The position numbers and the translations under genes are program-made. This document shows positions 8,065-41,660 of a stretch of DNA of 64,000 bases, one piece after another (position 1 is the stretch's first letter; every line of letters begins with the position of its first letter). The notes beneath the pieces are model-generated. The model ran no database searches and was not told the DNA's origin. It worked only from the letters and a program-made list of their open reading frames with translations. Location of the stretch: NCBI RefSeq assembly GCF_032444005.1, contig NC_091284.1, forward strand, positions 802,218,001 through 802,282,000. Reading direction: 5' to 3'. Source of the DNA: Ranitomeya imitator (Eukaryota).

Positions 8065-8179
8065 GAATCATAGAATGTTAGAGTTGGAAAGGACCTCCTA
8101 GGTCATCTGGTCCAACCCTCTGCTCAAAGCAGGATTCACTAAACATCCCAGACAGATGTCTGTCCAGTCACTGTTTGAA
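8065..8179 (-). mobile_element. CR1 3' end (family 2), left part of a split fragment
   Basis: Plus strand catagaatcatagaatgttagag is a CR1 (attctatg)n tail in reverse. The sequence appears to resume at 41500. Confidence 0.75.
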
Positions 8180-8602
8180 CATAGACTTATAAAAAACAGC
8201 CGCACTCAAGGTATAGGTTATTAAATGCAAAATTGAGTGACATTTTATTGTATTCTCCATAGTAGCATAAGGGTGTTGAGGTAAAGTTTTGACCCCATAA
8301 TGGGCCTTTATCAAACCTCACTGGAAAAAACAATAGATACAGTACATTAGATGTGAACGTAGGTTGCAATCCATGATGCAGACATAAGAAGATATAAGCA
8401 TGATGTGGCGTAAGTGCAGGCAGAGGGCACCACATATAGTCTAAAATATGCAACAAAAGATAATTTGGGGAAGAGTAAACAAATGAACTGACCTTGTTGT
8501 AGAATCAATTATGAAAAGGAAACACCGTAGAGGATAAGTAAGGAAACACTGTAGAAAGGAAAACAATTATATGAAAAGGGCTCCTAGGTAGAGCTGTGGA
8601 AG
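8180..8602 (-). repeat. Inverted partial pLTR at the 5' end of the Penelope-like element
   Basis: Reverse complement of ~40818-41420 (and partly of 8840-9015) with a ~200-bp internal deletion. Head-to-head junction with the direct copy at 8602. Confidence 0.85.
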
Positions 8603-9124
8603 CTTACGCTACGTCATGCTTATATCTGCTTATGTCTGCATCATGGATTGCAACCTACATTCACCCTTATATGGGCATTGTTTGTATATATATATTGTAT
8701 ATATGTCACTGCATGTAGTTCCACATGCATTTTTCTATTGGTATCGGATCTTTCTATTTGACATCGGAACTTATTCTATCCGATTGGCATGTTTGTATAT
8801 CACATTTGTATATAGTTCTGGCATATTACTTTTTACTTCAACATCTAATGTACTGTATCTTTATTGCTTTTTCCAGTGAGGTTTGATAAAGGCCCATTAC
8901 GGGATCGAAACGTTACCTCACCCTTATGCTACTGTGGCGAATACAATAAAATGTCACTCAATTTTTGCATTTGAAAACCTATACCTTGAGTGTGACTTTT
9001 TTATAAGTCTATGATTTAACTGGATCTTATCCGGGTTCAGCCTGCACCTATCCTTACTTATCTGAGTGCACGCCATTTTTTCTTTAAATTATCTGCTTTG
9101 TTGGAATTGTTATCAAAGCCCTAG
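8602..9124 (+). repeat. 5' pLTR / leader of the Penelope-like element
   Basis: Direct repeat of ~41010-41490. Contains a hammerhead motif and precedes the ORF ATG at 9125. Confidence 0.85.
8876..8921 (+). ncRNA. Minimal type I hammerhead ribozyme, U3-A8 core variant
   Basis: GTGAGGT-TTGATAA-A-GGCCC..GGATC-GAAA-CG-TT-ACCTCAC; 7-bp stem I; one mismatch in stem II. Confidence 0.7.
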
Positions 9125-10307
9125 ATGTCTACCGAAACTTTTGTGTTTGATGAGTCTGCAGCTACACAAATTCTTGCTAAAGTGATCAACCCAGGTGACT
9201 TCCTGAAAATTCCAGGTCAAGAACTCCACACGAAGGACTACGAGCGCGAGCGTAGGTGTTTGGCATCTTTTGACCTACATTCTATAACCCTAGCAGAATA
9301 CTATAAATTAAGCAGGATTCCACGTGGCCTTAGGTGCCACTTAAGACCGACACTGAGAAACCAGATTATTGCGACAAATTCCAGAAGTTCCTAAATAAAT
9401 GCTCTTTGGACATTATTTTGCTGACTATTGATTTTCTCCAAACAGCCATTGTAGAGTCTGAAGAGAAACTTTCTTCTATTGAGAAGCAGCTATCCACATC
9501 ATTAATCAGCAGCCAATTGAAGCTCCCTGAAGGCCAAAACTGAAAGCGATCGAAGAGCACCGAAAATATCTACAAGAAAAGAAATGCTCTAAATTCCAGC
9601 GAGACTGAGGACTATGCCCAAAACCGTATCTACAAATGGAACGACTGCTTTCTCGGGTACCAGACGAGGCAACACTGGACCTCGACGCCAGGGATCATAC
9701 AGCACGGACAGAAACCACTCTACAAGCAGCCTTTCACAAAATTGTTTATCATCCAAGCGCCCGAGCTCAAGGCCCAATACTCGCCACAGAGGAGACCAAT
9801 ACAGAGGGCCTCCCGGAAGCACAGATCGTATAACAACGATTTATCGGTTTATCCTTCTGCCCTACCCCGACCATGGGACAAGTTCAAATTGTCTCAAGAC
9901 TTCAAATGGAGATTGCGGTAGAAATGCTGTAAGACTCATTTTGGACTATTGCAGGACTTACCAAGGAATAGGATCCCCACATCTGTGGAGAATCCTATAC
10001 CTGAATTAAGCATTGTGCGATTGGGTTTGTGCAATACCAGTAGTTTTAATCCTCCACATAGCTATCACGCAACTGAGGCGTACACATCGATCTAATTCAA
10101 AAGGATATTGATGTTATCCTGGAACACCACCATAAAGGTAGCTTTTCGACTCAACAATATCTCTCCCATCGAGAAACAAGCTCTTAGTTCTCTTAGCACC
10201 ATCAAGAGTATTACCATAAAACCAGCCGATAAAGGAGATGCTATTGTCATACAGAATACCACTGATTATTTTTCCGAGATCTCTAGACAATTGTCCGATA
10301 TAACTAC
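9125..10307 (+). pseudogene. Penelope-like ORF, N-terminal region to the start of RT (frameshifted)
   Basis: LHSITLAEYYKLSRIPRGLRCHL ... TIKPADKGDAIVIQN..YFSEISRQLSDIT; interrupted at 10308 by an LTR element. Confidence 0.85.
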
Positions 10308-10790
10308 TGTAGGGGTTGTACTCGCTCAGGTGCGACGGCTGACACTCAAGAGGCACGTTCCATTAAAAGTTCACAGGGTTTATTGCTCCATAAACCACAT
10401 AGTAAATAACAGAAAACAAATAGCCTTTAGCTCAGGAAAAGAAAATACAAGTGTCCAGTCCTTCAGGCTCAGTCCTGGAGCCTTAACACACTCTGGGGGC
10501 TTTCACCTCCACACACACACCCACCTGTGTTAAGCATTAGCCTTTCTTTTATAGATATAACTACACCCAGGAACCCATCACATGATTAGACATTTGGTTA
10601 TGACATTACCACAGGTCCTGAAACACAGATAGGCATGGTTATGCCTCTTACCCAGGGGTGAGGTATATGGGTAGTCAGACCCTCTCTGCTTTATGTGGAT
10701 CAAAGAAAACACTCCGGGTTACATTACAGCGACAAGCCACCTATGTGACACATACCTCCCATCAACTATACAACCTTTAGCCACGTTACA
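10308..10790 (-). repeat. 3' LTR of the Gmr1-like element
   Basis: Homologous to 20586-21071. PPT AGGCAGAGGGGGGAGGTA on the minus strand at 10791-10808. Confidence 0.9.
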
Positions 10791-10799
10791 TACCTCCCC

Positions 10800-11255
10800 C
10801 CTCTGCCTAAAGCCGTGGGGCTTGGCACTTTCCCCCACTAGACAAGGGATTCTTGATAGGGCATCAGCATTACCGTGCAGCTTCCCAGCCCTATGTTCCA
10901 CATGGAAACTGAAGTCCTGCAGGGCTAAGAGCCAACGGGTGACCCTAGCATTTCTACCCTTCGTTTCCCTCATCCATCTAAGTGGGGCATGGTCGGATAT
11001 CAGTCTAAATTTACGTCCCAGCAGATAGTACCATAGCGTGTTCACTGCCCACTTTATAGCCAAACACTCCTTCCCTATGACTGAGTAATTCCTTTCAGAT
11101 GAGGACAGCTTCCTACTCAGATAGAGAACAGGATGCTCCTCCCCATGTAGCTCTTGGGAAAGGACTGCTCCTACCCCAACAACTGAGGCATCTGTCTAAG
11201 AAAGTTTATTCTTCAAAGTCTGGGGCCATCAGAACGGGTTGCTTACATAGAGCCC
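10800..11255 (-). pseudogene. RNase H of the Gmr1-like pol
   Basis: ALCKQPVLMAPDF, DASVVGVGAVL and AIKWAV..YYLLGRKFRLISDHAPLRW motifs; frameshifts present. Confidence 0.85.
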
Positions 11256-12128
11256 TGTGAATTCTGCTTTTGGGTTCCCTCCGGTGGTTGTAGGTGGTAA
11301 TGCAGTTGTCCCTGAGTGGCAGTCCTGGTCAGGTGTTTCTGCTGATTGCAGTTCTGACTGGGGTATTTAGGTGTGCAGGATTCATTAGTCCTTGCCAGTT
11401 GTCCATTGTTCTGGGAGGTTTTGGATCTTTGTCTGGTTCCTCCTGCCTGGCTGCCAAATCAGCAAAGATAAGGGTCTGTTTTTTTGTTTCTGTGGCACAC
11501 ATGCTGTGTGCATAATTATTCAGTGCTATTCTTTTGTTTTTTCTTGTCCAGCTTAGATTGTGTCAGTGTTTTCTCAGTCTTGTTGGATTCTCAGGAGATG
11601 CAGATATACTTTCCACGTCTTTAGTTAGATGGTGGAATTTTTTGTATTATCTGCTGTGGATATTTTTTGGAAGGGTTTTAATACTGACCGCTTAGTATTC
11701 TGTCCTATCCTTTCCTATCTAGCTAGAGTGGCCTCTTTTGCTAAATCCTGTTTCCTGCCTGCGTGTGTCTTTCCTCTACTACTCACAGTCAATATTTGTG
11801 AGGGGCTGCCTATCCTTTGGGGTTCTGCTCTGAGGCAAGGTAGAATTCCTATTTCTATCTATAGGGGTATTTAGTCCTCCGGCTGTGTCGAGGTTTCTAG
11901 GATTTTTTAGGCACACCCCACGGCTACTTCTAGTTGCGGTGTTAAGTTCAGGATTTGCGGTAGTTTCCACCAACTCCAGAGAAAGTTTCATGCTGTTCCA
12001 AGGTCACCGGATCATAGCAGTACAACTGGCCAATAATGAGTTAAATGCATCTCAGAAGAAGGGAAGAAAGGTGTTGAGCCATTTTTTTCTGCAGTCTGCT
12101 TTTTCTTCTCTTCCCTCTTAATCTCTGG

Positions 12129-13476
12129 GTGGCTGAGGAATCTTGTGCTAGCATGGATGTTCAGGAATTAGCTTCTCGTGTAGACCAGCTTGCTGCTAGG
12201 GTACAGGGTATTTCTGATTATATTGTTCAGACTCCTGCTTTAGAGCCGAAGATTCCTACTTTTGATTTGTTTTTTGGTGACAGGTCCAAATTTTTGAGTT
12301 TTAAAAACAACTGTAAACTGTTTTTTGCTCTCAGACCTCGATCCTCTGGTGATTCCATTCAGCAGGTTAAAATCATCATCTCCCTGCTGCGTGGCGATCC
12401 ACAGGATTGGGCATTTTCCCTGGAATCTGGGAATCCAGCTTTGCTTAATGTAGACTCCTTTTTTCAGGCTTTAGGATTATTATATGATGAACCTAATTCT
12501 GTGGATCAATGTTATGACCTGGTGGTTAAGAGGCCACACTGATATGACCTGGTGGCTAAAACGCAACATGGGACGAGCTCTGAGAAGGTGGTATCTCTAC
12601 TGACCGCAGTCCCTAATCCTAACAACAACACTAGAAATAGCCGTGGGATGTTCCTGACTCTCCCTAGACACCTCTTCACAGCCTAAGAAATAACTTTCCC
12701 TAAAGAAGGAAATAGAAAGCTATCTTGCCTCAGAGAAACCCCCAAAAGGAAAGATAGCCCCCCACAAATATTGACTGTGAATGGAGAGGGAAATAACGTA
12801 CATAGAAATGAAATCAGAATTCAGCAAAGGAGGCCAATACTAAACTAGATAGAGAGAAAAGGATACTGTGCGGTCAGTATAAAAACTACAAAATCCACGC
12901 AGAGATTACAAAAATGAACTCCACACCGAATCACGGTGTGGAGGGGCAAATCTGCTTTCCCAGAGCTTCCAGCTAGCCTGAATAAGACATAGTGACAAGC
13001 TGGACAAAAAGAGACATATTTGCAAAGCAATAGAGTCCAAACAAATGGACAAACAAAATCAAGCAAAAACTTATCTTTTGCAGACAAGGACTGGCCATAT
13101 GAAAATTCCAAGGAGAGAACCAAATCCAACAAAGAACATTGCTCTGGGCTTTAGTCCATGCCTGTTGTCAGGTTTAAATAACAAACCCAGGCAAGGCGAT
13201 CAGTGAAGGCAGCTGCTACAGCTACCTAAAGGAGCAGCAGTTCCACTCGAAACCACCAGAGGGAGCCCAAGGGCAGAACTCACAAAAATACCATTAGCAA
13301 CCACAAGAGGGAGCTCCAGAAGGGAATTCACAACAGATCAAGCGGAGAAGACCTTGTTGGCCCTGTCTCAGGGTCAGGAGGCGGCAGAATTGTATTGTCA
13401 GAAATTTAGAAAATGGTCTGTGTTGACTAAATGGAATGATGATGCTTTGGCGACAATTTTCAGAAAGGGTCTTTCT
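12129..13476 (+). pseudogene. Chromovirus gag N-terminal part, split by a solo LTR
   Basis: EPKIPTFDLFFGDRSKF..LLRGDPQDWAF..DEPNSVDQ|AEKTLLALSQGQEAAELYCQKF. Confidence 0.8.
12510..13335 (-). mobile_element. Solo LTR (chromovirus-related family)
   Basis: TGTTATG...CACAACA termini, 6-bp TSD GATCAA. Confidence 0.9.
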
Positions 13477-14300
13477 GGGCATTGATTTGTCTTTTTCTTC
13501 TGCATTTCATCCTCAGACAAATGGCCAGACCGAGCGAACTAATCAGACTTTGGAGACTTATTTGAGATGCTTTGTGTCTGCTGATCAGGATGATTGGGTG
13601 GCCTTCTTGCCATTGGCCGAGTTTGCCCTTAATAATCGGGCTAGTTCGGCTACTTTGGTTTCGCCTTTCTTTTGTAATTTTGGTTTTCATCCTCGTTTTT
13701 CTTCTGGGCAGGTTGAGCCTTCTGACTGTCCTGGTGTGGATTATGTGGTTGACAGGTTGCAGCAGATTTGGGCTCATGTGGTGGACAATTTGGTGTTGTC
13801 TCAGGAGGAGGCTCAACGTTTTGCTAACCGTCGTCGATGTGTTGGTTCCTGGCTTCGGGTTGGGGATCTGGTCTGGTTGTCTTCCCATCATGTTCCTATG
13901 AAGGTTTCTTCCCCTAAGTTTAAGCCTCGGTTTATTGGTCCTTATAGGATTTCTGGGATTATTAATCCCGTGTCTTTTCGATTGGCGCTTCCGGCCTCTT
14001 TTGCTATCCATAATGTCTTCCATAGATCTTTATTGTGGAAATATGTGGTGCCCGTTGTTCCCTCTGTTGATCCTCCGGCCCCTGTGTTGGCTGATGGAGA
14101 GTTGGAGTATGTGGTTGAGAAGATTTTGGATTCTCCTATTTCGAGGCAGAGGCTTCAATACCTTGTCAAATGGAAGGGTTATGGCCAGGAGGATAATTCT
14201 TGGGTTTTTCCCTCTGATGTCCATGCTGCTGATTTGGTCCGTGCCTTTCATCTGGCTCGTCCTGATGGCTCTGGTGAGGGTTTGGTGACCCCTCCTCAAG
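13477..14300 (+). pseudogene. Integrase C-terminal core, GPY/F motif and chromodomain
   Basis: SAFHPQTNGQTERTNQTLE, FIGPYRI, EYVVEKILDS...QYLVKWKGYGQEDNSWV. Confidence 0.9.
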
Positions 14301-15111
14301 GGGGGGTACTGTTGTGAATTCTGCTTTTGGGTTCCCTCCGGTGGTTGTAGGTGGTAATGCAGTTGTCCCTGAGTGGCAGTCCTGGTCAGGTGTTTCTGCT
14401 GATTGCAGTTCTGACTGGGGTATTTAGGTGTGCAGGATTCATTAGTCCTTGCCAGTTGTCCATTGTTCTGGGAGGTTTTGGATCTTTGTCTGGTTCCTCC
14501 TGCCTGGCTGCCAAATCAGCAAAGATAAGTGTCTGTTTTTTTGTTTCTGTGGCACACATGCTGTGTCCATAATTATTCAGTGCTATTCTTTTGTTTTCTC
14601 TTTTCCAGCTTAGATTGTGTCAGTGTTTTCTCAGTCTTGTTGGATTCTCAGGAGATGCAGATATACGTTCCACATCTTTAGTTAGATGGTGGAATTTTTT
14701 GTATTATCTGCTGTGGATATTTTTTGGAAGGGTTTTAATACTGACCGCTTAGTATTCTGTCCTATCCTTTCCTATCTAGATAGAGTGGCTTCTTTTGCTA
14801 AATCCTGTTTCCTGCCTGCGTGTGCCTTTCCTCTACTACTCACAGTCAATATTTGTGGGGGGCTGCCTATCCTTTGGGGTTCTGCTCTGAGGCAAGGTAG
14901 AATTCCTATTTCTATCTATAGGGGTATTTAGTCCTCCGGCTGTGTCGAGGTGTCTAGGATTTGTTAGGCACACCCCACGGCTACTTCTAGTTGCGGTGTT
15001 AAGTTCAGGATTTGCTGTCAGTATAGTTTCCACCAACTCCAGAGAAAGTTTCATGCGGCTCCAAGGTCACCGGATCATAACAGAGCCCCTTTCATTTCTT
15101 GGAAGGCTGAC

Positions 15112-16631
15112 TGTTGTGAATTCTGTTGTCGGGCTCCCTCCTGTGGTCATGAATGGTACTTCGGCTGGTTCTGTCCATGGACTTCCTCTGGTGGGTGTTT
15201 GAGTTTCCTTTCACAGGTGACGAGGTTAATTCGTTAGCTGCTGCTCTAACTCCACTTCGATCTTTGCTCCACGCCACCTGTCAATGTTCCAGTATTGGTC
15301 TAGTTCACTCCTGGATCGTTCTTGTGACCTGTCTTCCCATCAGAAGCTAAGTTCCAGCTTGTATTTCTTTGGTTTGCTATTTTTCTGTCCAGCTTGCTAT
15401 TTAATTTGTTGTCTTGCTTGCTGGAAGCTCTGGGACGCAGAGGGAGCGCCTCCGCACCGTGAGTCGGTGCGGAGGGTCTTTTTGCGCCCTCTGCGTGGTC
15501 TTTTTGTAGGTTTTTGTGCTGACCGCAAAGTAACCTTTCCTATCCTCGGTCTGTTCAGTAAGTCGGGCCTCACTTTGCTTAACCTATTTCATCTCTGTGT
15601 TTGTATTTTCATCTTTACTCACAGTCATTATTTGTGGGGGGCTGTTGTGAGTTCTGTTTTTGTGCTCCCTCTGGTGGTTACTGATGGTACTGGGTGACTT
15701 GTGTTCTCTGCGGTCTCTGGTGTCCACCTGTTCTATCAGGTTATGGGAGTTTCCTATTTAACCTGGCTTTTTTGTCATTTCCTCGCCGGCTATCAATGTA
15801 ATCAGCGTGTCTTTTTACCTCTGCTCCCTGCGTCTGTTATCTTCAGGACAAGCTAAGTTTTGATTTTCCTGTTCCACGTTTTGCTTAATTTTTGTCTTAG
15901 TCCAGCTTGCAGATATGCGATTCCTTGCTGCTGGTTGCTCTAGTGGGCTGAAATTACTCCTCATGTTCCATGAGTTGGCACATGAGTTCAAGTAATTTCA
16001 GGATGTTCACTTTTGTATCCTCTGCTATCTAGCTTTAGCGGGCCTCATTTTTGCTGATTCTATTTTCATAACTACGTATGTGCTTTCCTCTCATTTCACC
16101 GTTATTACATGTGGGGGGCTGCTATTTCTGTGGGGTGTTTCTCTGGAGGCAAGTGAGGTCTGTGTTTCTTCTAATAGGGGAAGTTAATCCTTCGGCTGGC
16201 GCGAGACGTCTAGGAATCATCGTAGGCACGTTCCCCGGCTACTGCTAGTTGTGTGTTTAGGTTCAGGATCGCGGTCAGCTCAGGTTCCATCACCCTAGAG
16301 CTGGTTTTGTTTTTGTGCTTGTCCTTTTGTGATCCCCTGCCATTGGGATCATGACAGGGGGCTGCCTTTTCCTTTGGGGAATTTCTCTGAGGCAAGGTAG
16401 GCTTTATTTTCCTATCTTCAGGGCTAGCTAGTTTCTTAGGCTGTGCCGAGTTGCATAGGGAGCGTTAGGCGCAATCCACGGCTATTTCTAGTGTGGTTGA
16501 TAGGTTTAGGGATTGCGGTCAGCAGAGTTCCCACGTCCCAGAGCTCGTCCTTTATTATCAGTAACTATCAGGTCATTCCGTGTGCTCTTAACCACCAGGT
16601 CCATTATTGTCCTGACCACCAGGTCATAACA
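15112..16631 (+). mobile_element. Solo LTR (15112-15642 + 16363-16631) carrying a second solo LTR
   Basis: TGTTGTG...CATAACA, 6-bp TSD GCTGAC. The rejoined sequence is similar to the LTR at 46960-47768. Confidence 0.85.
15643..16356 (+). mobile_element. Solo LTR nested inside a solo LTR
   Basis: TGTTGTGAG...CATGACA, 6-bp TSD GGGGGC (15637-15642, 16357-16362). Confidence 0.85.
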
Positions 16632-17624
16632 GCTGACTGTCTCTTTGGACCATTTAACCATTACTGATTTTGTCCCCTTTAGCAGATCAGTCAGAGGCGC
16701 AGCCACCATGGCAAAGTTTGGGATGAACCTCATGTCATATCCCACGATCCCCAGAAAGGCTTTAACTTGTTTTTTGTAGAGTGGTTTTGGCCATGTTTTA
16801 ATTGTCTCCACTTTATGGATTTGGGGCTTTATTTCTCCACGTCCCACTACATATCCTAGGTACTTAGCTTCTTCCTTACCCAAGGCACACTTCTTCGGGT
16901 TTATTGTAAACCCCGCCTCCCTTCGAGCATCAAACACCACTTGGACTTTTTCCAGATGACTCTCCCAGTCCGGGCTAAAGATGACAATATCATCCAGGTA
17001 CGCAGCAGCGTATGGCTTATGGGGTGCAAGGATTCTATCCATAGCCCTCTGGAAGGTCGCTGGAGCTCCCTGTAGGCCAAATGGCATCCGGACATACTGG
17101 AAGCATCCATTTGGTGTAGAAAACGCAGTCTTGTCCTTGGCTTCCTGTGGCTTGGGGATCTGCCAATACTCCTTCGTCAAATCCAAGGTGGTTATATACC
17201 TGGCGTGCCCAAGTCTTTCGATGAGCTCATCAACGCGGGGCATGGGATATGCGTCGAACTTGGAGACCTCATTCAACTTCCGATAGTCGTTGCAAAACCT
17301 CCACTCCCCATCAGGTTTTGGGACCAGGACAATTGGGCTCAACCAACTGCTCTTGGATTCCTCAATGACTCCAAGCTTCAACATGCGCTCCACCTCCTTG
17401 GAGATTACTTCTCGACGGGCCTCAGGAATTTGATAGGGCTTCACGTTCACCCGCACATTTGGATCTGTCAGGACCTCGTGCTCTATGACCTTCGTGCACC
17501 CTGGCAACTCTGAAAACAGGTCCCTGTTCTTCTGGAGTAACTCCCGGCACTGCCGTTTCTGGGCCTTCGATAGCGTCTCTGCTATAGTAACCCCTCCAAC
17601 CTCACCTTCTGGGTGGCCCAGCAA
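16632..17624 (-). pseudogene. Reverse transcriptase of the Gmr1-like pol
   Basis: WRFCNDYRKLN, TTLDLTK, MPFGLQGAPATFQ, YLDDIVIFS. Confidence 0.92.
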
Positions 17625-17689
17625 AGATGGAGTTACTGCCGGCTCTCTATCTTGCCATGGCTTGATGAGGTTGACATGGTAAACTTGGA

Positions 17690-18790
17690 TTGGTTTCAGT
17701 CTTCCTGGTTGATGAATTTTATAGTTTACCTCACCAAGCTTCTAGACCACCTCATATTGCCCTTGCCATTTGGCCAAGAACTTGCTCTCCACCGTCGGAA
17801 CTAACACAAGAACTCGGTCTCTCGGATTGAACTGCCTAACTCTTGCAGACCGGTTGTAGACCCTAACCTGATCTTCTTGTGCCTGGTGGCGGTGTTCTTT
17901 CACAATCGGCATCACCTTTGCAATCCTCTGCTGCATCAGGGCCACATGCTCAATGACGCTTCTGTGGGGCGTAACTTCGGCTTCCCAGGTTTCCTTGGCT
18001 ATATCCAGGAGACCTCGCGGATGTCGGCCATATAGAAGCTCAAACGGTGAGAACCCTGTGGAGGCCTGTGGAACTTCACAAATGAAAAACATCAGCTATG
18101 GTAAGAGACAGTCCCAGTCTCTACAGTCTCTCTCTATAGCTTTTCTCAGCATGCTCTTCAGTGTCTTGTTAAATCTCTCAACAAGGCCATCCGACTGAGG
18201 ATGGTACACCGAAGTCCTCAACTGGGAGATCTTCAGGGCTTTGCATAACTCCCTCATCACCTTGCTCATGAAAGGTGTCCCCTGGTCAGTCAGGATCTCC
18301 TTCGGCAGACCTGTCCGGGAAAACACATGGACCAACTCACGGGCTATACTTTTCGAGGAAGAATTTCTCAGGGGAATTGCCTCAGGGTAGCGTGTGGCAT
18401 AGTCCAGAATGACTAGTACTGTATATACCGATGGCCCCGGGCTGATTTAACTAAGGGACTGACCAAGTCCATGGCAATTCTATCGAATGGCACCTCAATA
18501 ATGGGCAATGGCACAAGGGGGCTCTGGAAATGAGAAGTGGGGGCAGTTAGCTGACATGTAGGGCTGGACCTGCAATAGTTCACTATTTCCCGGTGACACC
18601 CAGGCCAATAGAACCTCTGCACAACCCGTTCCTGCATTTTTCCACCCCTAGGTGTCCACCCAAGTTATGTGAATGGGCCATGTCCAACACCTTCCGTCTA
18701 TATGGACCCGGCACTACCAACTGCTCTACCAACTCCTCCCTTATTTCCATGACCCGGTACAACAACTCCCCACTCATCAGAAAATAGGGA
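17690..18790 (-). pseudogene. Integrase of the Gmr1-like pol (upstream of RT)
   Basis: AHSHNLGGHLG, IEVPFDRIAMDLV, LTDQGTPF, VYHPQSDGLVERFNKTLK, KWQGQYEV; frameshifted. Confidence 0.88.
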
Positions 18791-18943
18791 AATCTTGTGT
18801 CTGCCCCGACTCCTGTACAACCCCATTAATAACTGACATTATTAAAGGCTTCCCTCAGAGTGGGGTCCCTATGTTGGGCAGTCTCAAAATTTTCTCCGGT
18901 CACCCCTAACTCCAGAATGTCAGATGCAGGGGACACTTCCTCC

Positions 18944-20300: not shown

Positions 20301-20565
20301 GGACATGGGTGTCATCAGCCAGACCTGGGGTTGGGGCACTCGTCCTGCCCTGGATGGCAGTTGCCAGAAGCTGCATCTGCTGCCATTGCTCCTGCTGGCT
20401 CTGTTGTGTCTGCTGCAGCAACAGCCAGTTGGTCTCTTGCTGCTATGACTGCGACTGGACCAAGTGTTTCAGAAGGTCCTCCATTTTCCCTGGCAATGCT
20501 TGCTGGCTTGCAACAGACTTGACCCAGGACATTCAATAACAGACTTACGTCTCTGCTGGGAACCC

Positions 20566-20583: not shown

Positions 20584-20585
20584 AT

Positions 20586-21071: not shown

Positions 21072-21075
21072 CTAC

Positions 21076-30210: not shown

Positions 30211-30239
30211 ATGCATATTCTAGAATACCCGATGTGTTA

Positions 30240-31605: not shown

Positions 31606-32394
31606 AGGTACCGTTATACTAAATGATTTACCAACGATCACGACCAGCGATACGACCTGGCCGTGATCGTTGGTAAGTCGTTGTGTGGTCGCTGGGGAGC
31701 TGTCACACAGACAGCTCTCTCCAGTGACAAACGATCAGGGGAAAAACTTCAGCATCGTTGAAACTGTCTTCAACAATGCCGAAGTCCCCAGGTAACCAGG
31801 GTAAACATCGGGTTACTAAGTGCAGGACCGCGCTTAGTAACCCGATATTTACCCTGGTTACCATTGTAAAAGTAAAAAAAAAAACACATACTCACATTCC
31901 GATGTCTGTCACGTCCCCCATCAGCTTCCCTGCACTGTGTAACGCCGGCCGTAAAGCAGAGCGGTGACGTCACCGCTGTGCTCTGCTTTACGGCCGGCCG
32001 GCGCTGACACAGTCAGTGCGGGAAGCTGATGCCGGGGGACATGACAGAGAACAGAATGTGAGTATGTACTGTTTTCATTTTTTAACTTTTACAATGGTAA
32101 CCAGGGTAAATATCGGGTTACTAAGCGCGGCCCTGCGCTTAGTAACCCAATATTTACCCTGGTTACCAGTGAACACATCGCTGGATCGGCATCACACATG
32201 CCGATTCAGCAATGACAGCAGGTTATCAGCGACCAAGCAAAAAAGGTCCTGATCATTCCCCAGCGACCAACGATCTCCCAGCAGGGGCCTGATCGTTGGT
32301 CGCTGTCACGCATAACGATTTCGTTAACGATATCGTTGCTACGTCACAAAAAGCAACGATATCGTTAACGAAATCGTTATGTGTGAAGGTACCT
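31606..32394. mobile_element. AGGTACC-family MITE in L2
   Basis: TSD TAA/TAA. Confidence 0.9.
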
Positions 32395-32769
32395 TAAGGT
32401 CACCAATGACCTTTTAACTGCCAAGAGCAAGCGACACTACTGTCCCCCTCGACCTGTCGGCTGCCTTTGACACAGTGGACCATTCCCTATTACAGATCCT
32501 CTCATCCCTTGTCATCACAGACTTGGCCCTACCCTGGATCTCATCATACCTAACAGACCGAACATTCAGCGTCTCCCTCTCACACACCACCTCCTCACCT
32601 CGCCCCCCATCTGTCGGAGTCCCACAAGGTTCAGTCTTAGGGCCCCTGCTCTTGTCCATTTACACCTTTGGCCTGGGACAGCTCATAGAATCTCATGGCT
32701 TTGAGTGTCACCTCTATGCTGATGACACACAGATCTACATCTCTGGACCAGATATCACCTCCCTACTAA

Positions 32770-33107
32770 GGCTGGGATCACATTGCGTTTCGGGTGTCCG
32801 TTTAACGGACTACGTTACACCGCTGCATAACGCGGTGTAACGTAGTCAGTTAACGCCACCATTGCTAGTAATGGCAAACGCATCGCTAGCGCATGCCCAC
32901 ATTGGGCGTGCGCTAGCGATGTGCCGTCATTTGAGTGACAGACCCGAGACGCTGGCTGCAGTGTTTCCGGGTCCCCACTGCTAGCGCAGATGAAGCTAGC
33001 AGAAGCTCCACCTGCACTAGCGTGATGTAGCGCAGGCACTTGCACTAGCAGCAGCCCGTTAGCGGATGTGCTGAACGGGCTGCTGCTAACGCAATGTGAC
33101 CCTAGCC
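32770..33107. mobile_element. Harbinger-like MITE (GGCTAGGGTCACATTGC-type TIR) in L2
   Basis: TSD TAA/TAA; removal restores SLLTRIPQCL. Confidence 0.88.
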
Positions 33108-33474
33108 TAACCAGAATCCCTCAATGTCTGTCCACTATTTCATCCTTCTCTGCTAGATTTCTGTAACTTAACATGGACAAAACAGAATTCATCATCTTTC
33201 CCCCATCTCACGCGACCCCCCCAACGAACCGATCCGTTACAGTAAATGGCTGCCCACTCTACCAGTCTCACAAGCTCGCTGTCTCGGGGTAATCCGTGAC
33301 GCTGATCTCTCCTTCAAACCACATATCCAAGCCATTTCCACTTCCTGCCGACCAACTCAAAAATATTTCACAAATCCGTTCATTCCTCAAACAAGAATCT
33401 GCAAAAACCCTAGTCCATGCCCTTATCTCACGCCTTGACTACTGCAACCTCCTGCTCTGTGGCCTCCCCTCTAA

Positions 33475-33883
33475 AGGTACCTTCACACTGAACGATATAG
33501 CTAGCGATCCGTGACGTTGCAGCGTCCTGGCTAGCGATATCGTTCAGTTAGACACGCAGCAGCGATCAGGATCCTGCTGTGATGTCGTTGGTCGCTGCAG
33601 AAAGTCCAGAACTTTATTTTGTCGCTGAACTTCCTGCAGACAGACATCGCTGAATCGGCGTGTGTGACGCCGATTCAGCGATGTCTTCGCTGATAACCAG
33701 GGTAAACATTGGGTTACTAAGCGCAGGGCCGCGCTTAGTAACCCGATGTTTACCCTGGTTACCGGCATCGTTGGTCGCTGGAGAGTTGTCTGTGTGACAG
33801 CTCTCCAGCGACCAAACAGCGACGCTGCAGCGATCGACATCGTTGTCGGTATCGCTGCAGCATCGCTGAGTGTCAAGGTACCT
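33475..33883. mobile_element. AGGTACC-family MITE (short deletion form) in L2
   Basis: TSD TAA/TAA. Confidence 0.9.
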
Positions 33884-34636
33884 TAACACTCTCGCACCCC
33901 TCCAATCTATTCTAAACTCTGCTGCCCGACTAATCCACCTGTCCCCCCCGCTATTCCCTGGCCTCTCCCCTCTGTCAATCCCTTCACTGGCTCCCCATTG
34001 CCCAGAGACTCCAGTACAAAACCCTAACCATGACGTACAAAGCCATCCACAACCTGTCTCCTCCATACATGTGACCTCGTCTCCCGGTACTTACCTACAC
34101 GCAACCTCCGATCCTCACAAGATCTCCTTCTCTACTCCCCTCTTATCGCCTATTCCCACAATCGTATACAAAGATTTCTCTCGCGTATCACCCCTACTCT
34201 GGAACCCTCTACAACAACACATCAGACTCTCGCCTACCATCGAAACCTTCAAAAAGAGCCTGAAGACCTACCTCTTCCGACAAGCCTACAACCTGCAGTA
34301 ACCACCGATCGACCAAACCGCTGCATGACCAGCTCTATCCTCGCCTACTATATTCTCACCCATCCCTTGTAGATTGTGAGCCTTCGCAGGCAGGGTCCTC
34401 TCCTCCTGTACCAGTTATGACTTTTAAACAATACAAGTATTGTACTTGTTTTTATTATGTATACCCCTCCTCACATGTAAAGCGCCATGGAATAAATGGC
34501 GCTATAACAATAAATAATAATAATAATTAGGAAAATGGAAGTAACCACAAGTTTCAGAACCGCATAATTAATTTTTTAAAAAATATCAAAGTTCGAAAAC
34601 GGTCATTTTTGACCTAACAGAACAGCACGGTTTTAA

Positions 34637-35800
34637 GGGAACGTGAATCTCACTGGATATACACTTCGCAAACTCTTACACCAAAAGGCCTAAAATCGGA
34701 AACTTGACCTAGTTTTCTGAAAGTGTACCTTAGCCACCGGGTCTCCTGCTGTATTCGAACTACATATTCTATAGTTTGTTTGAATGCATATTTCTATGAT
34801 TATGCTATATATTTTTTCAATATACTGTTGTTGGCGGTTTAGTGTTTAACAGACTGACCTGTTGGTTTCTTGTGCACTAACTTTTTTCACTGCTTTCAGG
34901 CTGTTACACCCGACTGGGGTAAGTACCCAGAACACAAAAAATACATTTTCCCTATTTTTTTCATTTTATTTATATTTTCTTCATTAATTAATTTTTTTCA
35001 TTTTTTCTATTTTATTTTTTTTACACTTTTCAATTTTTTCACTTGTTCTCTTTTTTCAATTTATTTTTATCTTCATTTTTTCCATTTCTCCTTTTTTCAT
35101 TTTAGTTTTATTTGTATTCTTATTTTTGACTCCCACTTTTCATCTTATTTTTATTTAGTACTTATTTTCTTATCATTGTTTTTCATTGTTACTTCTATTT
35201 TTCACTTTTCCATTTTTCATTTTACATTCCCTTTTAATTTTTCTAGGTTTTTTCTATGTTCACTTTTCATTTAATTTATTTTATTTTTATTTTTTTATCC
35301 CATTCGCCATCCGATTTATTATTACCTTTCATCACATGTTCATCATTCATTAATCTATTAGTCCCCTTCCCCCTTCTTTTTCAATCATTTTTTTTTCACA
35401 ATTTTTTTTATTTCCTTTTCCCTTCTTTCAATCTTTATTGTTCATATCACCTTTTCACCTTATTTCTTGCGTTCATCTGGCTCCTATCCTTTCTTTCATC
35501 TACCATCATACTTCACTCTCATCTCCCCCTCTATTTTGCAAGTTACACTCCCAGCGCTTCTCTTCAGAGTGCTTTGCGCACGCATACACAGTTCCTCCTG
35601 TGGATGCCCGCCTCTCCCAGCGCCTCTTCGCCTTTGACTTACTCTGCACACTCCAGCCATTCTCCTTGCAATCGCGCAGGCGCCCACCTGGTTGAGCGTT
35701 CCAAACCTCTCCCTCAAGCTATCCACTGTGCATGCACCATCTCCACGCGATTTCTCTGCTTTTCCTGCCCGGGCACTAGAACTTCCCACTGACCACCAAT
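34637..35800 (+). mobile_element. Penelope-like ORF end and T-rich 3' region
   Basis: RERESHWIYTSQTLTPKGL followed by a long T-rich low-complexity tract (34940-35520). The right boundary is uncertain. Confidence 0.65.
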
Positions 35801-36849
35801 GCCAGCGCCCATCACCACAGGGATCTTATCGCCCGGACCCGCAGGTAGAGCGCTTGCCCTCCACTTGGATTCTTATTACTACACTTCTGGGCCATATTTC
35901 TCATTACTGGAAACGAAACCTCCGCTCGTGACCTGTCACATGGCGCTATCATGTGACCGCGACGTCATGAAGGTCCTTCTGAGGAAAGGTCCTGAATTAG
36001 TGATGGGCAGTCCGGCTCTTTTTTGGTGATCCGGCTTATTCGGCTCTGCTCACCATAAAGAGCCGTCTTTCGGCTCGCGAACTGGCTCTTATTCAAAATA
36101 AAAATCCGTTTTCCACAGTCCTCGCTCCAGGTCTTTGCCTGTAGAGTGACAGCCTCATTATACCCCTGTATATGGATCTAGTGAAGCAGCACAGACTGGT
36201 TTCAGCATTGCTATTTCCTCAGATTGTCAGCTCTTGTGAACAGGGCCCTGCTACTCAGTTGTAGTCTTATGTATTACTTTCTAATATGGGGCATTTTTTT
36301 GTACACGTCCTTTCTGAATTAGTAAGTGCTGTGATGTACTGGCGCTGTAAGATTATAATTCATAAAAATAAAGGCATGTAACACGCACTGGTGAAAGTGA
36401 AAGAAAATAAAAATTAGGCTCCGAGCCTGCGCAGCATGAAATTCGCATGCAGATTGGATACAGTCATCCAGATTCGGGTGCGTCTACATTGACAATCATA
36501 TGTTTTTTGGATGCGCTGCCACGTACCAGGATGTCTGCAGATTTTTTAACACCCAAAATTCACAACAAGCTGCGTTTTGGGAGCACATGACAAATCCTGA
36601 TGCATCCTGATCCTGATGCAAACGCAGGTCCATGCGTCCTTATGTTAAGTATAGAGATGCAATCTGGATCAGGATTGCTACACATCACAACGCACCGTAC
36701 CAAAGCGCTAGTGTGAAAGCAGAGCCACTCATGCAGACCCTAACCAGGTGCCCCCATGTTATATACAGGCCCCCAATCCATGTTATTACCATTAGCACAC
36801 TATAACATAGGGCACAAGCCGCTCACTGCACAGCATGCATAGTCTCCAT

Positions 36850-38095
36850 TAACTAATTAACTAATTACTAACTATGTGTGTGGTTTTTTGTCCTATATTT
36901 TTTTTATCTGATGGCGCTTTATGGCAGTAGGAATAGAATTATGATATCTGTTTTTTATGTTATTTTTTTATGTTTTTTTGTTTTATGTTTTTTATGTATA
37001 CTTTTATATACAGTGTAGTTTTTATATGTGTAGTTTATTGTTTATTTAGTTCTGTGTATGTGGATTGTTGTACGATTAGTATATCATGTGACTGTTGTTC
37101 TAATTGTTATGCACGTGCACATTTTTCTGTATATATTGTACATATATTGTGAGATATATATTCTCTATGTTGGCACATACCCACTATAGCATGACCTTGA
37201 GGGAGTTTGGATTGGGAATTATCCCCCTTTATATCATGGTCATCTATTGAGTAATTTCACATCCTTGTTCTGCTCTGTGGTCCTCAAAGATTTTCTCACG
37301 GTAAAGGGCCGCTATTTCTTTATATGCACTTTTTGCACTTTAATTATATATTATGACAGTTGGCATACATTGTCAACTGTATGAGTTTGTGGATAATTGG
37401 GTAGGGAATTACTCTTTTTTGACATCACTACCTCCTTGTTTGTTCTATGAGATCGGCGTTCTCCCTGCTGCCATTAGCGTTTCCCTCGAGTAAAATGGCC
37501 GTTACTGCACGCGCACATGTGCTCCACGGTGGGGCTTACTGATCATCATCCCCGGCATTCATTTGCGGTGGAGCAGGAAATGATGTCTGGAGGGTTTTCC
37601 CTCGGCCTGCTCTGTACGCCGGAAGTACCGGAGATGTTGTGTGCAGCGTCCCAGATGATGGCGGTGCGCATGCGCCAATCATTTTGCAGCACGGTCATCG
37701 CAGCTGTCGATATGCCCTTAAATATAACCCCAGGTAAGCATAGAAACACGACCCCCCGAGGAAGCTTACGCGAAACGTGCGTCGGGGCCGCCGGACACAC
37801 ACTGGCACCACTAGTTTTCGGGTAAGATTGGCAAAGCTTTATTACCATTACCTATTTTAGGTCTGATTAGTATCAACATATATGGCGGTATTAGGGATTC
37901 GCATGTCCCTTAAGAGCACTATGCACTTTACTAACGTATCTATGATGACTGATATGCCCCCATAAGCCATTGTTGCTCTTGTCCTCTCTATGCCCTAGGT
38001 GTTATTTGCAGTGTATGTTGTCTGCCGTACATGTACTATACGTGTCCCTTGTATGTCATGTCTGTTATTTTATATGATGATATATAATAAAATTT
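36850..38095 (+). mobile_element. pLTR-like fragment of a second Penelope-like family
   Basis: T-rich lead-in, GC-rich core, hammerhead motif at 37752-37787, AATAAA near 38086. Confidence 0.55.
37752..37787 (+). ncRNA. Minimal type I hammerhead ribozyme (CCGAGGA core variant)
   Basis: CCCC-CCGAGGA-A-GC-TTAC-GC-GAAA-CGTGCG-TC-GGGG. Confidence 0.65.
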
Positions 38096-39194
38096 GTTAC
38101 GCTTTTTAGCCTGTTACGCTCTTTGGGTTTATTGATACTCCATAGTTTTTCTGTAGGATTAATAGTCTCCATTATGTCTGCATACTGTTCCCATACAGGG
38201 TCATCACTTTCCCATAAAGCACATCCCCTGCTTCCGAGCATGCTCAGTCCCACATAACAGATCCGTGCTCCATGGTAATTCCAGACGTGTAGCCACAGGT
38301 CCGTGCGGGTCCCTGTGCCTGCGTGTTTTTCAGATGACACAAAGCTGCAACAAGTTGTGTTTTTCTGCGTCTGGTAAAATTATGCAGACACACGGATCTG
38401 TGGGAAAATGGTGACAACTGGATGCACACGCAAGTCCCATCCGTCACCATTGAAAGTCAATGGAGACTAAAACGGATCAGTGTGCAGCCATTGTCACACA
38501 CAATGCGAAATATGCAAGTGTGAAACCAGCATAACTATATATAATGATTGGAGCTGTGAAACACAGGTTTTGCCTAAAATCACTTTATATTACCCTCAGC
38601 AGCAACAACCGACATCGTCCATCCTCCTCCCTATATGTTCCTTTCCTGAATCCTCCTCAGTCCTGACTAATACTATGTTACCAAACAATCTGCTGAGTCC
38701 CTCCTCCTATACATACATATATGTACATGCCATGGATGAGGCCACTATGCTGTCGCTCCTCCTATACATATACACAGTATATAATGCCATGGATGAGGCC
38801 AGTAAAGTATATCTTTATTTGGGACTAAGGTAACTCAGATCCTGACTCCAGCACTGAAGGATGGTGTAACACTAATGCTTGCATTAGACTGATGGCACTT
38901 AAGGGTTACACAATAGGAAGCCCTTTTTTTCTTTTCTCATCCACCCTGTCCTGTGCTTGTCTGCACCATTTCTCCAGTACTCACAGGCATTTACTAACAG
39001 TCCACAGATACCTCTCTCCTCACTGCTCCTCCCACATGAGTCACAGTCAGGGTTCACTGAATCTGATAAGCTCCAGGCACCAGCCAAGAAAGAAAAACAA
39101 AAGACTTGGCTCACTCACACTCCAGAGCCCACTCCTTTCATTCACAGCAGGGAGCCGGCTCTTTGTGTTGGCTCATTCATTCATTCAAGGACAC

Positions 39195-39265
39195 ATCAAT
39201 TCAATTCAATTCAAATGAGCTTTATTGGCAGGACTAAGTACAGGTTAGCATTGCCAAAGCATATG
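39195..39265 (-). mobile_element. LINE 3' tail fragment ((TTGAA)n), inverted relative to 28570-28790
   Basis: Plus strand attcaattcaattcaaatgagctttattggcagg. Confidence 0.6.
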
Positions 39266-39442
39266 GTAAAAATACAGGGGTGGGGGAGGGAGGCATATAG
39301 AGGTCCAGGATATATAAGACTCCTTTTAGAGGATAGGGGTCACATCACTATCCTGAATAGTTGGTGCAGCTGTGTCTGTGACTGGTCACTGGCGGACACT
39401 GTGCAGCCTCGTCTCAGGCACCAGAGAGTACGTGAACAGCAG

Positions 39443-40474
39443 ATGATGGATGCCCTCACAGAGGCCCTTGCAGGGAGCTTCGCGGTTTCTTCCCACCTCA
39501 ATAGTACTTCAGCTCCTCATCCAAGATTAGCGCAGTATAAAGGCAAATCCAGCTCTCTGGAGCAGAGCGAGCGCAGGAGGAAACTGCTGGAACTACAGAA
39601 ACTAAAGCGCTTGGACTATATCAACCATGCTCGCCGGCTCGCATCTGGGGATTGGACAGACCAAGATGAAGAGAAGGATGAGGATGGGAAACAAACAGAA
39701 GACGAAGACGCAGAGGACATGAATGTGGAGCCTTGCAAAAAGAAACCCAGACATTATGCTAACCAAATTATGCTTCCTGAGTGGCTAATAGAAATTCCTC
39801 CAGATCTGGCTGATTTTTGGATTCTTGTAGTCTGCCCCACTGGAAAGCGTTCTTTAGTTGTGGCTTCACAGGGTTCTACTGCAGCTTACAATAAAAGTGG
39901 GTACTGCGTGAACAGGTTTCCATCATTACTACCAGGTGGAAATCCGCATAACAGTGCTACTGGTAAAGACTACACTATCCTGGACTGCATATATAACGAG
40001 GAGTCTCACACATATTACGTGTTAGATGTCATGTGTTGGAGGGGAGACTCGGTGTACGACTACCACACTGACTTTCGTTTTTACTGGCTCCAAGCAATGC
40101 TGCAGGAAGATGGGTTTGGTAATATTTCCAAGATCAACCCTTTCAAGTTCGTTAGTCTGCCGAATTTCCCCTGTTCGTTGGATTCCATTCAGAGTGTCCT
40201 CACACAGTCCTATCCCTACAAGGTGGACGGCCTGTTATTTTACCACAGGCGCACACACTATATTCCAGCTAGTACTCCGCTGGTTGGGTGGCTCCATCCA
40301 TACATGGCACCTGAAATTCTAGGATTTCCTGCCCCACCAGGACCCCTTACAGAAAAGCCAGCATATGCACAAGAGCAAATGCGACAGATTCTTGAACACA
40401 AGAAGGATGGGAAAGGAGCAGCGGAGGGTGGACGTTATGAACTGGAACATCTGTCAACAATCCCTCCATCCTAA
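39443..40474 (+). CDS. SNUPN: Snurportin-1 intronless retrocopy with an open reading frame (343 aa from the first ATG); function unproven
   Basis: IBB region [68 protein letters not shown]. Colinear with the vertebrate SNUPN sequence as recalled, with no introns. Confidence 0.93.
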
Positions 40475-40814
40475 GAAAAGACTGCTGGCACACGCTCTCC
40501 TGGATGGTGCGCACATTCATTGCTGCTGTTCATATAACACCACCTGTGCTTTGACCTTAATATTGTTCTGGACCTGATATGGAGTTAATGTACAGCGGTG
40601 CACTATTTATAAACCTGCAGAATACATTTTATAGCTTTTTTTTATAAAGATACATTTTCATATTTCTCATTACTATGTATGCATTCCTCTAGCTCGTATG
40701 GGTATGGTGAGATTGCGGTACTAGTCCATGTGTTGCCAGTAGGTACTTTTTTGTTTTTCTCATTTCCCTTTGGTTCTTTCCTTCCCCTCTTTTTTTCTTT
40801 ATTCAGCATCTCTT

Positions 40815-41497
40815 TTCCTTCCACAGCTCCACCTAGGAGCCCTTTTCATAGAATTGTTTTCCTTCTGCGGTGTTTCCTTTTCATAATTCATTCTACAACA
40901 AGGTCAGTTCATTTGTTTACACTTCCCCGGTATATTGACTCGTCAAATTATCTTTTGTTGCATATTTTAGACTATATGTGGTGCCCTCTGCCTGCGCTTA
41001 CGCCATATCATGCTTATATCTGCATCATGGATTGCAACCTACGTTCACCCTTATATGGGCATTGTGTGTATATATTGTATATATTATACATGTATTTGAT
41101 ATATGTCACTGTATGTAGTTCCACATGCATTTTTCTATTGGTATCGGATCTCTCTCTATTTGATATCGGAACTTATTCTATCCGATTGGCATGTTTGTAT
41201 ATTGCTTTTGTATACAGTTCTGGCATATTACTTTTTACTTCAACATCCAATGTACTGTATCTTTATTGTTTTTTCCAGTGAGGTTTGATAAAGGCCCATT
41301 ATGGGGTCGAAACGTTACCTCAACACCCTTATGCTACTGTTTTGAATACAATAAAATATCACTCAATTTTTGCATTTGAAAACCTATACCTTGAGTGCGG
41401 CTGTTTTTTTATAACTATGATTTAACTGGATCTTATCCGGGTTCAGACTGCACCTATCCTTACTTATCTGAGTGCACGCCATTTTTTTCATAAATAA
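40815..41497 (+). repeat. 3' pLTR of the Penelope-like element
   Basis: Direct repeat of 8602-9085 and inverted repeat of 8180-8602; ends about 45 nt short of the position equivalent to the ORF ATG. Confidence 0.85.
41279..41322 (+). ncRNA. Minimal type I hammerhead ribozyme, U3-A8 core variant (best-preserved copy)
   Basis: TGAGGT-TTGATAA-A-GGCCC-attatg-GGGTC-GAAA-CG-TT-ACCTCA; predicted cleavage after 41316. Confidence 0.75.
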
Positions 41498-41499
41498 GT

Positions 41500-41660
41500 C
41501 AGCCTCTGTTTGAAGACTTCCATTGAAGGAGAACTCACCACCCCTCGTGGCAGCCTGTTCCACTCATTGATCACCCTAACTGTCAGAAGTTTTTTTCTAA
41601 TATCTAATCGGTATCTCCTCCCATTCAGTTTCATCTCATTGCTTCTAGTCTTTCCTAGTC
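41500..41660 (-). mobile_element. CR1 (family 2), right part of the split fragment
   Basis: cagcctctgtttgaagacttccattgaagg continues the sequence ending at 8179 with a 15-bp overlap. Confidence 0.75.

Follow-up and report, generated by a model that had tools for sequence, protein, structure and literature searches.

How does a tract of some 33 kb, made up of elements of quite different kinds, come to lie inside a single long interspersed element (LINE), and does it record one event or several? The question is raised by a stretch of 64,000 nucleotides of the Ranitomeya imitator genome (NCBI RefSeq assembly GCF_032444005.1, contig NC_091284.1, positions 802,218,001 to 802,282,000 of the forward strand; this whole stretch is called the window, and all positions are its own), which is vertebrate DNA dense with transposons. 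At 8165-41514 a CR1 LINE is interrupted by a composite whose ends belong to a Penelope-like element (PLE). The observations support a single Penelope-type insertion inside the CR1 that grew later, through nested insertions, from some 5.6 kb to 33 kb, and we put the probability of this reading at roughly 0.85. We read the locus as one PLE event because the two CR1 pieces are adjacent and share a 15-bp target-site duplication (TSD), because the ends are those of a canonical PLE, and because the coding pieces in between are collinear with a full-length PLE protein. A preliminary description of the locus had proposed just such a composite, a single insertion with PLE ends that grew later, and its coordinates and junctions were recovered within a few bases.

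The CR1 target and the ends of the insertion

The sequence at 8061-8179 opens with CATAGAATCATAGAATG, which matches, in reverse complement, the ATTCTATG repeats at the end of CR1 LINEs, and this places the CR1 on the minus strand with its 3′ end at the left. CR1 3′ ends carry ATTCTRTG octamer repeats, and CATTCTATGATTCTATG occurs on the minus strand at about 8061-8077. Read downwards from 8179, the left piece encodes FKQ*LDRHLSGMFSESCFEQRVGPDDLGGPFQL (FKQ*LDRHLSGM...), followed by a stop and then by the CATTCTATGATTCTATG terminal repeats; the right piece, translated on the minus strand (41664-41500), encodes KRLGKTRSNEMKLNGRRYRLDIRKKLLTVRVINEWNRLPRGVVSSPSMEVFKQRL and ends in ...SPSMEVFKQRL. 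Both pieces, taken with one copy of the 15-mer, make up a single reading frame. Self-BLAST revealed no second copy of the CR1 flanks in the window, and their adjacency was therefore tested at the protein level. A protein search with the right piece yielded four independent C-termini of CR1 open reading frame 2 (ORF2), two from hoatzin proteins, one from an egret protein and one from an ENA contig (62-67% identity, E 5e-9 to 5e-11). All four read gap-free through PSMEVFK[IAK][RC][LV]D[RGV]A[LF].., and when both pieces are aligned to P0001 and P0002 they share exactly 5 residues (FKxRL = 15 bp). The features expected of a CR1 target, a conserved ORF2 C-terminus and 3′ terminal repeats, are thus both present.

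Because these C-termini are gap-free and the bases that encode FKQRL stand at both breakpoints, the 15-mer is, as judged from sequence, a target-site duplication. Its two copies are identical at 13/15 positions and lie at the exact ends of the terminal-repeat homology described below; the right copy (FKQRL) retains the ancestral reading, and the left has mutated at two bases, so that its coding strand has TGA in place of AGG. With up to 2 mismatches allowed, the window holds one extra site against a chance expectation of 0.16, namely the FKKSL motif of an L2-like ORF, which is homologous to FKxxL. The preliminary description had placed the two pieces consecutively in CR1, split with a 13/15 duplication of 15 bp, and had named non-adjacency among the results that would overturn it; examined at the protein level, the pieces are adjacent in CR1 ORF2.

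Immediately inside the two breakpoints, a three-way alignment shows a single family of pseudo-long terminal repeats (pLTRs) at both ends, inverted and direct on the left and direct on the right, as had been proposed. The left direct copy is 92.5% identical to the right copy and the inverted copy 92.8%, corresponding to a Kimura two-parameter (K2P) distance of about 0.08. The inverted copy ends at ...TATAAGTCTATG, the left direct copy begins deeper in the repeat and continues into the 5′ untranslated region (UTR), and the right direct copy is the longest. Both direct copies overrun the 3′ end of the inverted copy by about 80 nt, so that the extension is present at one end only; tail extensions at one end are known from other PLEs (PMC11167929), with published lengths of 30-40 bp (PMC8557442, PMC11167929). 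Direct pLTRs that derive from a partial tandem, with an inverted 5′-truncated copy abutting them, have likewise been described for PLEs (PMC3846280, PMC8557442), and the inverted/direct/direct layout is a canonical PLE product. All three pLTRs also contain, by eye, a variant hammerhead-like core, TTGATAAA-[GGCCC..GGGGTC]-GAAAC, for which TGAGG/CCTCA may form helix I; these cores lie at 41279-41322, 8866-8910 and 8255-8300 (minus), and in them T and A replace the usual C3 and G8.

In mechanistic terms, target-primed reverse transcription at nicks 15 bp apart would have duplicated CAGCCTCTGTTTGAA and left an initial product of about 5.6 kb, composed of an inverted 5′-truncated copy, a partial tandem copy that contributed the upstream pLTR, and a full unit ending in the downstream pLTR. 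Afterwards this PLE copy would have decayed, and it would have received at least six primary insertions or rearrangements: the Gmr1-type long terminal repeat (LTR) element, the TTA-flanked miniature inverted-repeat transposable element (MITE), the filler that replaces the thumb, the Tc1 element, the TTAA-flanked element and a 4.75-kb block that carries a copy of the host gene SNUPN. Several secondary insertions would then have followed the primary ones.

The dispersed coding region and the nested elements

As the ruler for the coding pieces we used P0016, an R. imitator PLE protein of 819 aa with an RVT_1 match of 39.5 bits (cut-off 29.6) and, at residues 716-767, a marginal Pfam GIY-YIG match (E=0.0014, below the gathering score). 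The pieces in the window are collinear with this protein (Table 1), and the residues abut at the junctions of the Gmr1-type (236/236), Tc1 (639/641) and TTAA (792/793) elements. The segment 27338-27785, which covers residues 641-792 and so spans the GIY-YIG match, is 51-59% identical to P0016, and 21071-21358 has 490 protein matches at E<=0.001 (best E=1e-49). The N-terminal part, 9125-9920, aligns with the other PLE proteins P0005 and P0008. Residues 521-612, in the thumb, are absent from the PLE in the window, which agrees with the earlier observation that part of the thumb is missing between 22630 and 24930. Removal of the inserts rejoins DITT/YKK, HDL/GLQ, PPL/MCK and KPL/RERE in frame. 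What had been described as one reverse transcriptase (RT)-GIY-YIG ORF rejoined in frame is therefore correct at each junction but does not amount to a single open frame, since several frameshifts and stops interrupt it elsewhere; these rule out an intact ORF after removal of the inserts and mark the copy as dead.

Table 1. Features of the split CR1 and of the composite within it, in window coordinates
Positions	Strand	Feature	P0016 residues
8061-8179	-	CR1 LINE 3′-terminal piece: ORF2 end (FKQ*LDRHLSGMFSESCFEQRVGPDDLGGPFQL*), then ATTCTATG terminal repeats	
8165-8179	.	Left TSD copy, 15 bp, CAGTCACTGTTTGAA	
8180-8603	-	Inverted 5′-truncated pLTR; 176-nt internal deletion; without last ~80 nt of direct copies	
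8604-9096	+	Direct upstream pLTR, 3′ end of 5′-truncated tandem unit	
9097-10307	+	PLE 5′ part: short 5′UTR, ATG 9125, decayed N-terminal region	up to 236
9922-10092		Aligned segment	111-164
10096-10308		Aligned segment	186-236
10308-21071	-	Gmr1-type LTR retrotransposon, TSD CTAC; LTRs 10308-~10790 and ~20586-21071	
11256-15083		Chromodomain Ty3/gypsy remnant inside Gmr1-type element; LTRs 97% identical, TSD GAGCC	
15100-16500		Further LTR-like debris inside Gmr1-type element	
21071-21358		Aligned segment	236-326
21076-21455	+	PLE RT piece	
21360-21449		Aligned segment	358-367
21456-22186	.	MITE, ends AGGTACC...GGTACCT, TSD TTA	
22190-22630	+	PLE RT piece with YIDD motif	378-520
22190-22321		Aligned segment	378-413
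22373-22630		Aligned segment	445-520
22631-24925	.	Non-PLE filler in place of ~92 aa of thumb	(521-612)
24926-25008	+	PLE piece	613-639
24923-25009		Aligned segment	613-639
25009-27336	-	Tc1/mariner element, TSD TA (25007-8, 27337-8)	
27339-27783	+	PLE GIY-YIG endonuclease piece, one frameshift	641-792
27338-27619		Aligned segment	641-736
27570-27785		Aligned segment	720-792
27784-34632	.	TTAA-flanked non-autonomous element, 6.85-kb composite; short imperfect terminal inverted repeats (CCTGCTGTTCT... / ...AGAACAGCACGG)	
34637-34707	+	PLE ORF end RERESHWIYTSQTLTPKGLKSET, stop 34705-34707	793-814
34636-34703		Aligned segment	793-814
34708-35908	+	Presumed PLE 3′UTR, first part, T-rich; last 16 nt are the left 16-mer copy	
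35909-40658	+	4,750-bp block between perfect 16-bp direct repeats CATATTTCTCATTACT	
40675-40814	+	Presumed PLE 3′UTR, second part, upstream of pLTR homology start	
40815-41499	+	Direct downstream pLTR, 3′ end of full unit, including ~80-nt tail 41420-41499	
41500-41514	.	Right TSD copy, 15 bp, CAGCCTCTGTTTGAA	
41500-41740	-	CR1 LINE upstream piece, ORF2 ...GKTRSNEMKLNGRRYRLDIRKKLLTVRVINEWNRLPRGVVSSPSMEVFKQRL, 5′-truncated near 41740	

The elements nested in this coding region each have a TSD and domains typical of their class, both of which are read directly from the sequence. The largest, the Gmr1-type element, has TG...CA LTRs that are about 90-91% identical and contains on the minus strand, in this order, gag and protease, Integrase_H2C2 (18664-18416), rve (18446-18099) and RVT_1 (17741-16509). 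An integrase upstream of the RT is the Gmr1 order, that of the Gmr1-like Ty3/gypsy retrotransposons reportedly treated by Goodwin and Poulter in 2002. The copy in the window resembles these elements in the position of its integrase (H2C2 plus rve), in its LTR ends and in its 4-bp TSD; it differs in being truncated after the RT and invaded by other LTR elements. The MITE family has other copies in the window, at about 30260-30940, 31665-32230, 33470-33885 and 41870-42560.

The filler that stands in place of the thumb is itself heterogeneous, with a MITE-like end, ATAG microsatellites, palindromic repeats at 24330-24680 and an internally deleted Tc1-like element whose terminal inverted repeats (TIRs) lie at 23410-23514 and 24115-24219. 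Near its right end, a 44-nt inverted match (about 40/42) links 24879-24923, just left of the point at which PLE sequence restarts beyond the missing thumb, with 35072-35113 in the T-rich presumed 3′UTR. It may be either a chance likeness in low-complexity DNA or the trace of a rearrangement, and we rejected it as proof of the latter because it is short and of low complexity.

The Tc1/mariner element, with ends CAGTGGGG...CCCCACTG, combines a TA duplication and TIRs with a DDE transposase that has paired helix-turn-helix domains: its intact ORF of 340 aa (25220-26242, minus), of Tc1/Sleeping-Beauty type, matches HTH_SB, HTH_Tnp_Tc3_2 and DDE_3. In its 5′ region, about 26345-27090 are occupied by a CR1-like LINE 3′ end that interrupts the element. 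Two such 3′ ends, 26357-27081 (+) and 42626-43154 (-), are 99-100% identical, which suggests a very young family that is probably active; the C-terminus it encodes (..NSVEGFKRGLDVFLEQNNIVSYN) is paralogous to that of the split CR1. The TTAA-flanked element, a candidate piggyBac-type element, has TTAA at both ends and no transposase remnant within it, and its excision restores the PLE frame. It contains three MITE copies, the 3′ part of an L2-like LINE (32475-~34530) and, at about 29640-30265, a 20-bp CTGGGCAATATACTACGTGG-like repeat arrayed in tandem about 30 times. The four inserts originally put forward on the basis of their TSDs (Gmr1, MITE, Tc1 and the TTAA element) thus stand, with the refinements that the Tc1 carries a LINE fragment and that the TTAA element is composite.

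The block carrying a snurportin-1 copy

Between the PLE ORF and the downstream pLTR lies a complete open snurportin-1 (SNUPN) frame of 343 codons (39443-40474; Pfam Snurportin1 and SPN1_m3Gcap_bd, E=4e-80 and 1e-17). It forms a single high-scoring segment pair of 1,038 nt with the spliced SNUPN transcript of another frog (L001), and since it is intronless and collinear with a spliced mRNA, and the parental SNUPN model in R. imitator spans 17.7 kb, the copy is a processed one. The UTRs of a distant frog SNUPN transcript fail to align with the window. The best protein match of the copy, at 98% identity, is an R. imitator protein from assembly GCA_958301615.1, the source also of the closest PLE proteins. 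In R. imitator, model P0155 (424 aa over 2,966 bp) joins the ORF 37517-37825, as a first exon, to the SNUPN copy; because it shows the same arrangement, the block is shared with that assembly and so, by nesting, is the PLE.

The copy is part of a larger block delimited by two perfect copies of the 16-mer CATATTTCTCATTACT (35893-35908 and 40659-40674), which are its only two sites in the window at <=2 mismatches (expected 0.05). From an unannotated 5′ part the block continues through a CpG-rich promoter-like stretch (~37440-37830) to the intronless coding sequence (CDS) and its 3′UTR, and the 3.5 kb upstream of the CDS lie within the 16-bp repeats as well. The CpG-rich stretch contains GCGCATGCGC, CCGGAAGT and CCAAT motifs (NRF1-, ETS- and CCAAT-like) and ends in GTAAG; the 1.6-kb spacer that follows (37826-39418) ends in ...TCTCAG just before the start of SNUPN. 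Stretch and spacer could be a first exon and intron retained from the parent gene. Two short repeats touch the block. A palindromic motif with a CRE-like TGACGTCA (GACCTGT..CATGTGACCGCGACGTCAT..AGGTCCTTCT) is common to 29451-29566 and 35929-35980; this TGACGTCA motif belongs to a repeat and is included in gene model P0007. A 71-nt inverted match of 91.5% identity joins 39201-39270 in the block with 28725-28795 in the TTAA element and is a small repeat.

Like processed vertebrate retrocopies, the SNUPN CDS is intronless, collinear with a spliced frog mRNA and open, and its arrangement recurs in an R. imitator gene model. It differs from them in that the block has no poly(A) tail or A-run at the SNUPN 3′ end and in that the repeat, instead of directly flanking the mRNA copy, encloses the 3.5 kb of extra upstream DNA with its promoter-like CpG stretch, and for these reasons it is at odds with a simple L1-type retrocopy. 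The copy has 22 amino-acid changes of its own in 291 columns (7.6%), 16 of them at sites that are invariant in five other anuran sequences, as against about six real changes in the parent, which indicates relaxed constraint. In neutral simulations (d=0.035, with the indel-to-substitution ratio taken from the window's own repeats), the frame stays open in only about 1% of cases, leaving room for some selection on the copy. A second intronless R. imitator copy, P0165, has 8/12 of these changes.

It is worth considering whether this gene arrived with the PLE or after it. Because the block is bracketed by a perfect 16-bp repeat of its own, it has the look of a later arrival in the PLE 3′UTR. The repeat itself looks like a TSD, and the block is most simply read as a separate, later, TSD-making insertion, not as a capture by the PLE. 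The composite does enclose a host gene copy, as the preliminary description had it, and the refinement is that this copy would have its own date and its own duplication. Before its arrival the 3′UTR would have read ...TTCTGGGC-CATATTTCTCATTACT-ATGTATGC..., the 16-mer being present once. When the block is taken out, the presumed 3′UTR measures about 2.0 kb (~2.05) and the PLE unit about 4.9 kb, and in a related R. imitator PLE tandem a distance of about 2.4 kb, close to this ~2.05 kb, separates the end of one ORF from the start of the next.

Alternative histories, age and comparison with known elements

The principal alternative to a later arrival is that the RT switched templates onto a host RNA while the PLE was being inserted, so that SNUPN DNA was captured between the ORF or 3′UTR and the 3′ pLTR and the element bore the gene from the start. 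The block does have the ORF on one side and the 3′ pLTR on the other, stands in PLE orientation and lacks a poly(A) tail, and its amino-acid divergence of 7.6% (~0.035 per site if neutral) is near the per-copy divergence of the pLTRs (~0.04). There is also a precedent, in that host-derived spacers and pLTR-framed host genes have been documented for PLEs, above all for Pen1_Av of the rotifer Adineta vaga (PMC3846280). The likeness to Pen1_Av extends to the position of the host-derived DNA and to its orientation, that of the element. However, the rotifer genes retain introns and are framed directly by pLTRs, whereas the block has a spliced, intronless CDS and its own 16-bp flanking repeat, which argues for a later event here; any mobilisation by a PLE is in this case only hypothetical. 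The repeat brackets the block exactly, its right copy following directly after the end of the SNUPN 3′UTR, 12 nt past TATAAA; homology is confined to these 16 nt on either side, a length reached in 3/2000 shuffles. Moreover, the block contains no pLTR-like sequence, and about 140 nt of non-SNUPN sequence separate it from the start of pLTR homology; together with the 16-bp repeat, these led us to reject the idea that the SNUPN copy abuts the pLTR. Capture at insertion thus seems unlikely to us. More speculative is the thought that a later insertion was carried out in trans by Penelope enzymes acting on a partly processed host transcript, and that the product was then kept as an open, possibly functional retrogene in Ranitomeya-type frogs. 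The CpG-rich 5′ part, the GT...AG-bounded spacer, the spliced CDS, the missing poly(A) and a 16-bp TSD that resembles the 15 bp of the PLE suggest it, and we regard it as a long shot; if true, it would be the first vertebrate case of PLE-mediated dispersal of a host gene.

The ends themselves could in principle derive from two events, that is, from independent PLE copies, or from a PLE and a solo pLTR-type retrozyme, that came to lie near unrelated CR1 fragments, the 13/15 match being only a conserved motif. The 15-mer does encode a conserved LINE motif, FKxxL, which the L2-like ORF in the window matches with 2 mismatches. Nevertheless, each copy of the 15-mer marks precisely where the pLTR homology terminates; the CR1 pieces lie in one frame on one strand and jointly give one uninterrupted ORF2 C-terminus and 3′ end with one copy of the motif; from end to end, all PLE coding pieces are collinear, with no redundancy among them; and the two direct pLTRs resemble the inverted copy as closely as they do each other. 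Two events are, on this showing, highly improbable. We find it scarcely credible that the arrangement is an assembly artefact produced by mis-joined repeats in a repeat-rich frog genome. Tandem and inverted PLE structures are known to confuse assemblies (PMC8557442), and even the sequencing runs that match best contain no more than about half of the words sampled from 38900-41700. Against this, there is no N gap within 8165-41514 (the sole N run in the window is at 53737-53914), the TSDs at the two ends of each nested element match, which mis-joins would not produce, and an independent R. imitator gene model reproduces the arrangement of 37517-40474. One of the 2 junction-overlapping 31-mers sampled from the 60-nt right junction is present in runs of organism labels B, D and E. 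This weighs weakly against an artefact, and we do not claim from 1/2 sampled words that other organisms share the junction.

The single-insertion reading, which we prefer, has some evidence to contend with. At the gathering score for the whole window and at E<=10 for the right pLTR, Rfam found no hammerhead in the pLTRs, nor did any other family match. The short PLE pieces alone match no Pfam family, so that PLE identity was established through full-length homologues. Two of the 15 positions of the TSD differ, and the LTRs of the Gmr1-type element are nominally a little more diverged than the pLTRs (K2P 0.094 and 0.08), though a nested element must be the younger; the gap lies within sampling error. 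Finally, the extent of the native PLE 3′UTR, including the assignment to it of the sequence on either side of the block, is deduced from this one copy. With the inner gypsy LTRs at 0.026, the K2P values would nonetheless fit a nested history in which pLTRs and Gmr1 LTRs are equal within error. At an assumed rate of 1-2e-9 substitutions per site per year (our own assumption), the pLTR distance would place the PLE insertion some tens of millions of years ago.

In all, 33,320 bp separate the two copies of the TSD, of which about 5,570 bp (17%) are PLE and 83% are foreign DNA. It is informative to compare this PLE with the canonical endonuclease-bearing (EN+) PLEs of the Penelope/Poseidon/Neptune type (Arkhipova et al. 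2013, PMC3846280; Craig et al. 2021, PMC8557442). It shares with them a single ORF with a PLE-type RT and, at its C-terminus, a GIY-YIG domain, a partial tandem that yields two direct pLTRs, an inverted 5′-truncated copy that abuts the upstream pLTR, perhaps a counterpart of their one-sided 3′ tail, and a TSD of the variable-length kind around the whole complex. In contrast, the TSD is 15 bp here as against 8-10 bp in rotifers, the tail-like extension reaches about 80 nt and not 30-40 nt, the presumed 3′UTR is long (~2 kb), Rfam recognizes no hammerhead, and the copy is dead and mostly foreign. The locus is thus a well-preserved textbook case and no new kind of element; the PLE process is ordinary in kind, what is known of PLEs is unchanged by it, and its interest is low to moderate. 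It is a clean and fully resolvable example of a 5.6-kb retroelement insertion growing six-fold by nesting in a large frog genome, and should be of use for curating PLE, Gmr1, Tc1 and MITE families and for relative dating. The part with a broader appeal is the SNUPN copy, which is a candidate retrogene open to testing and offers a case for probing the RT behind frog retrocopies.

Elsewhere in the window, the short stretches 44150-44371 (minus), 55027-55161 and 6523-6657 are 80-95% identical to parts of R. imitator PLE gene models, namely to N-termini or internal parts (P0016 residues 1-75, P0013 residues 309-358); these are other repeats that have been fused into the PLE gene models.

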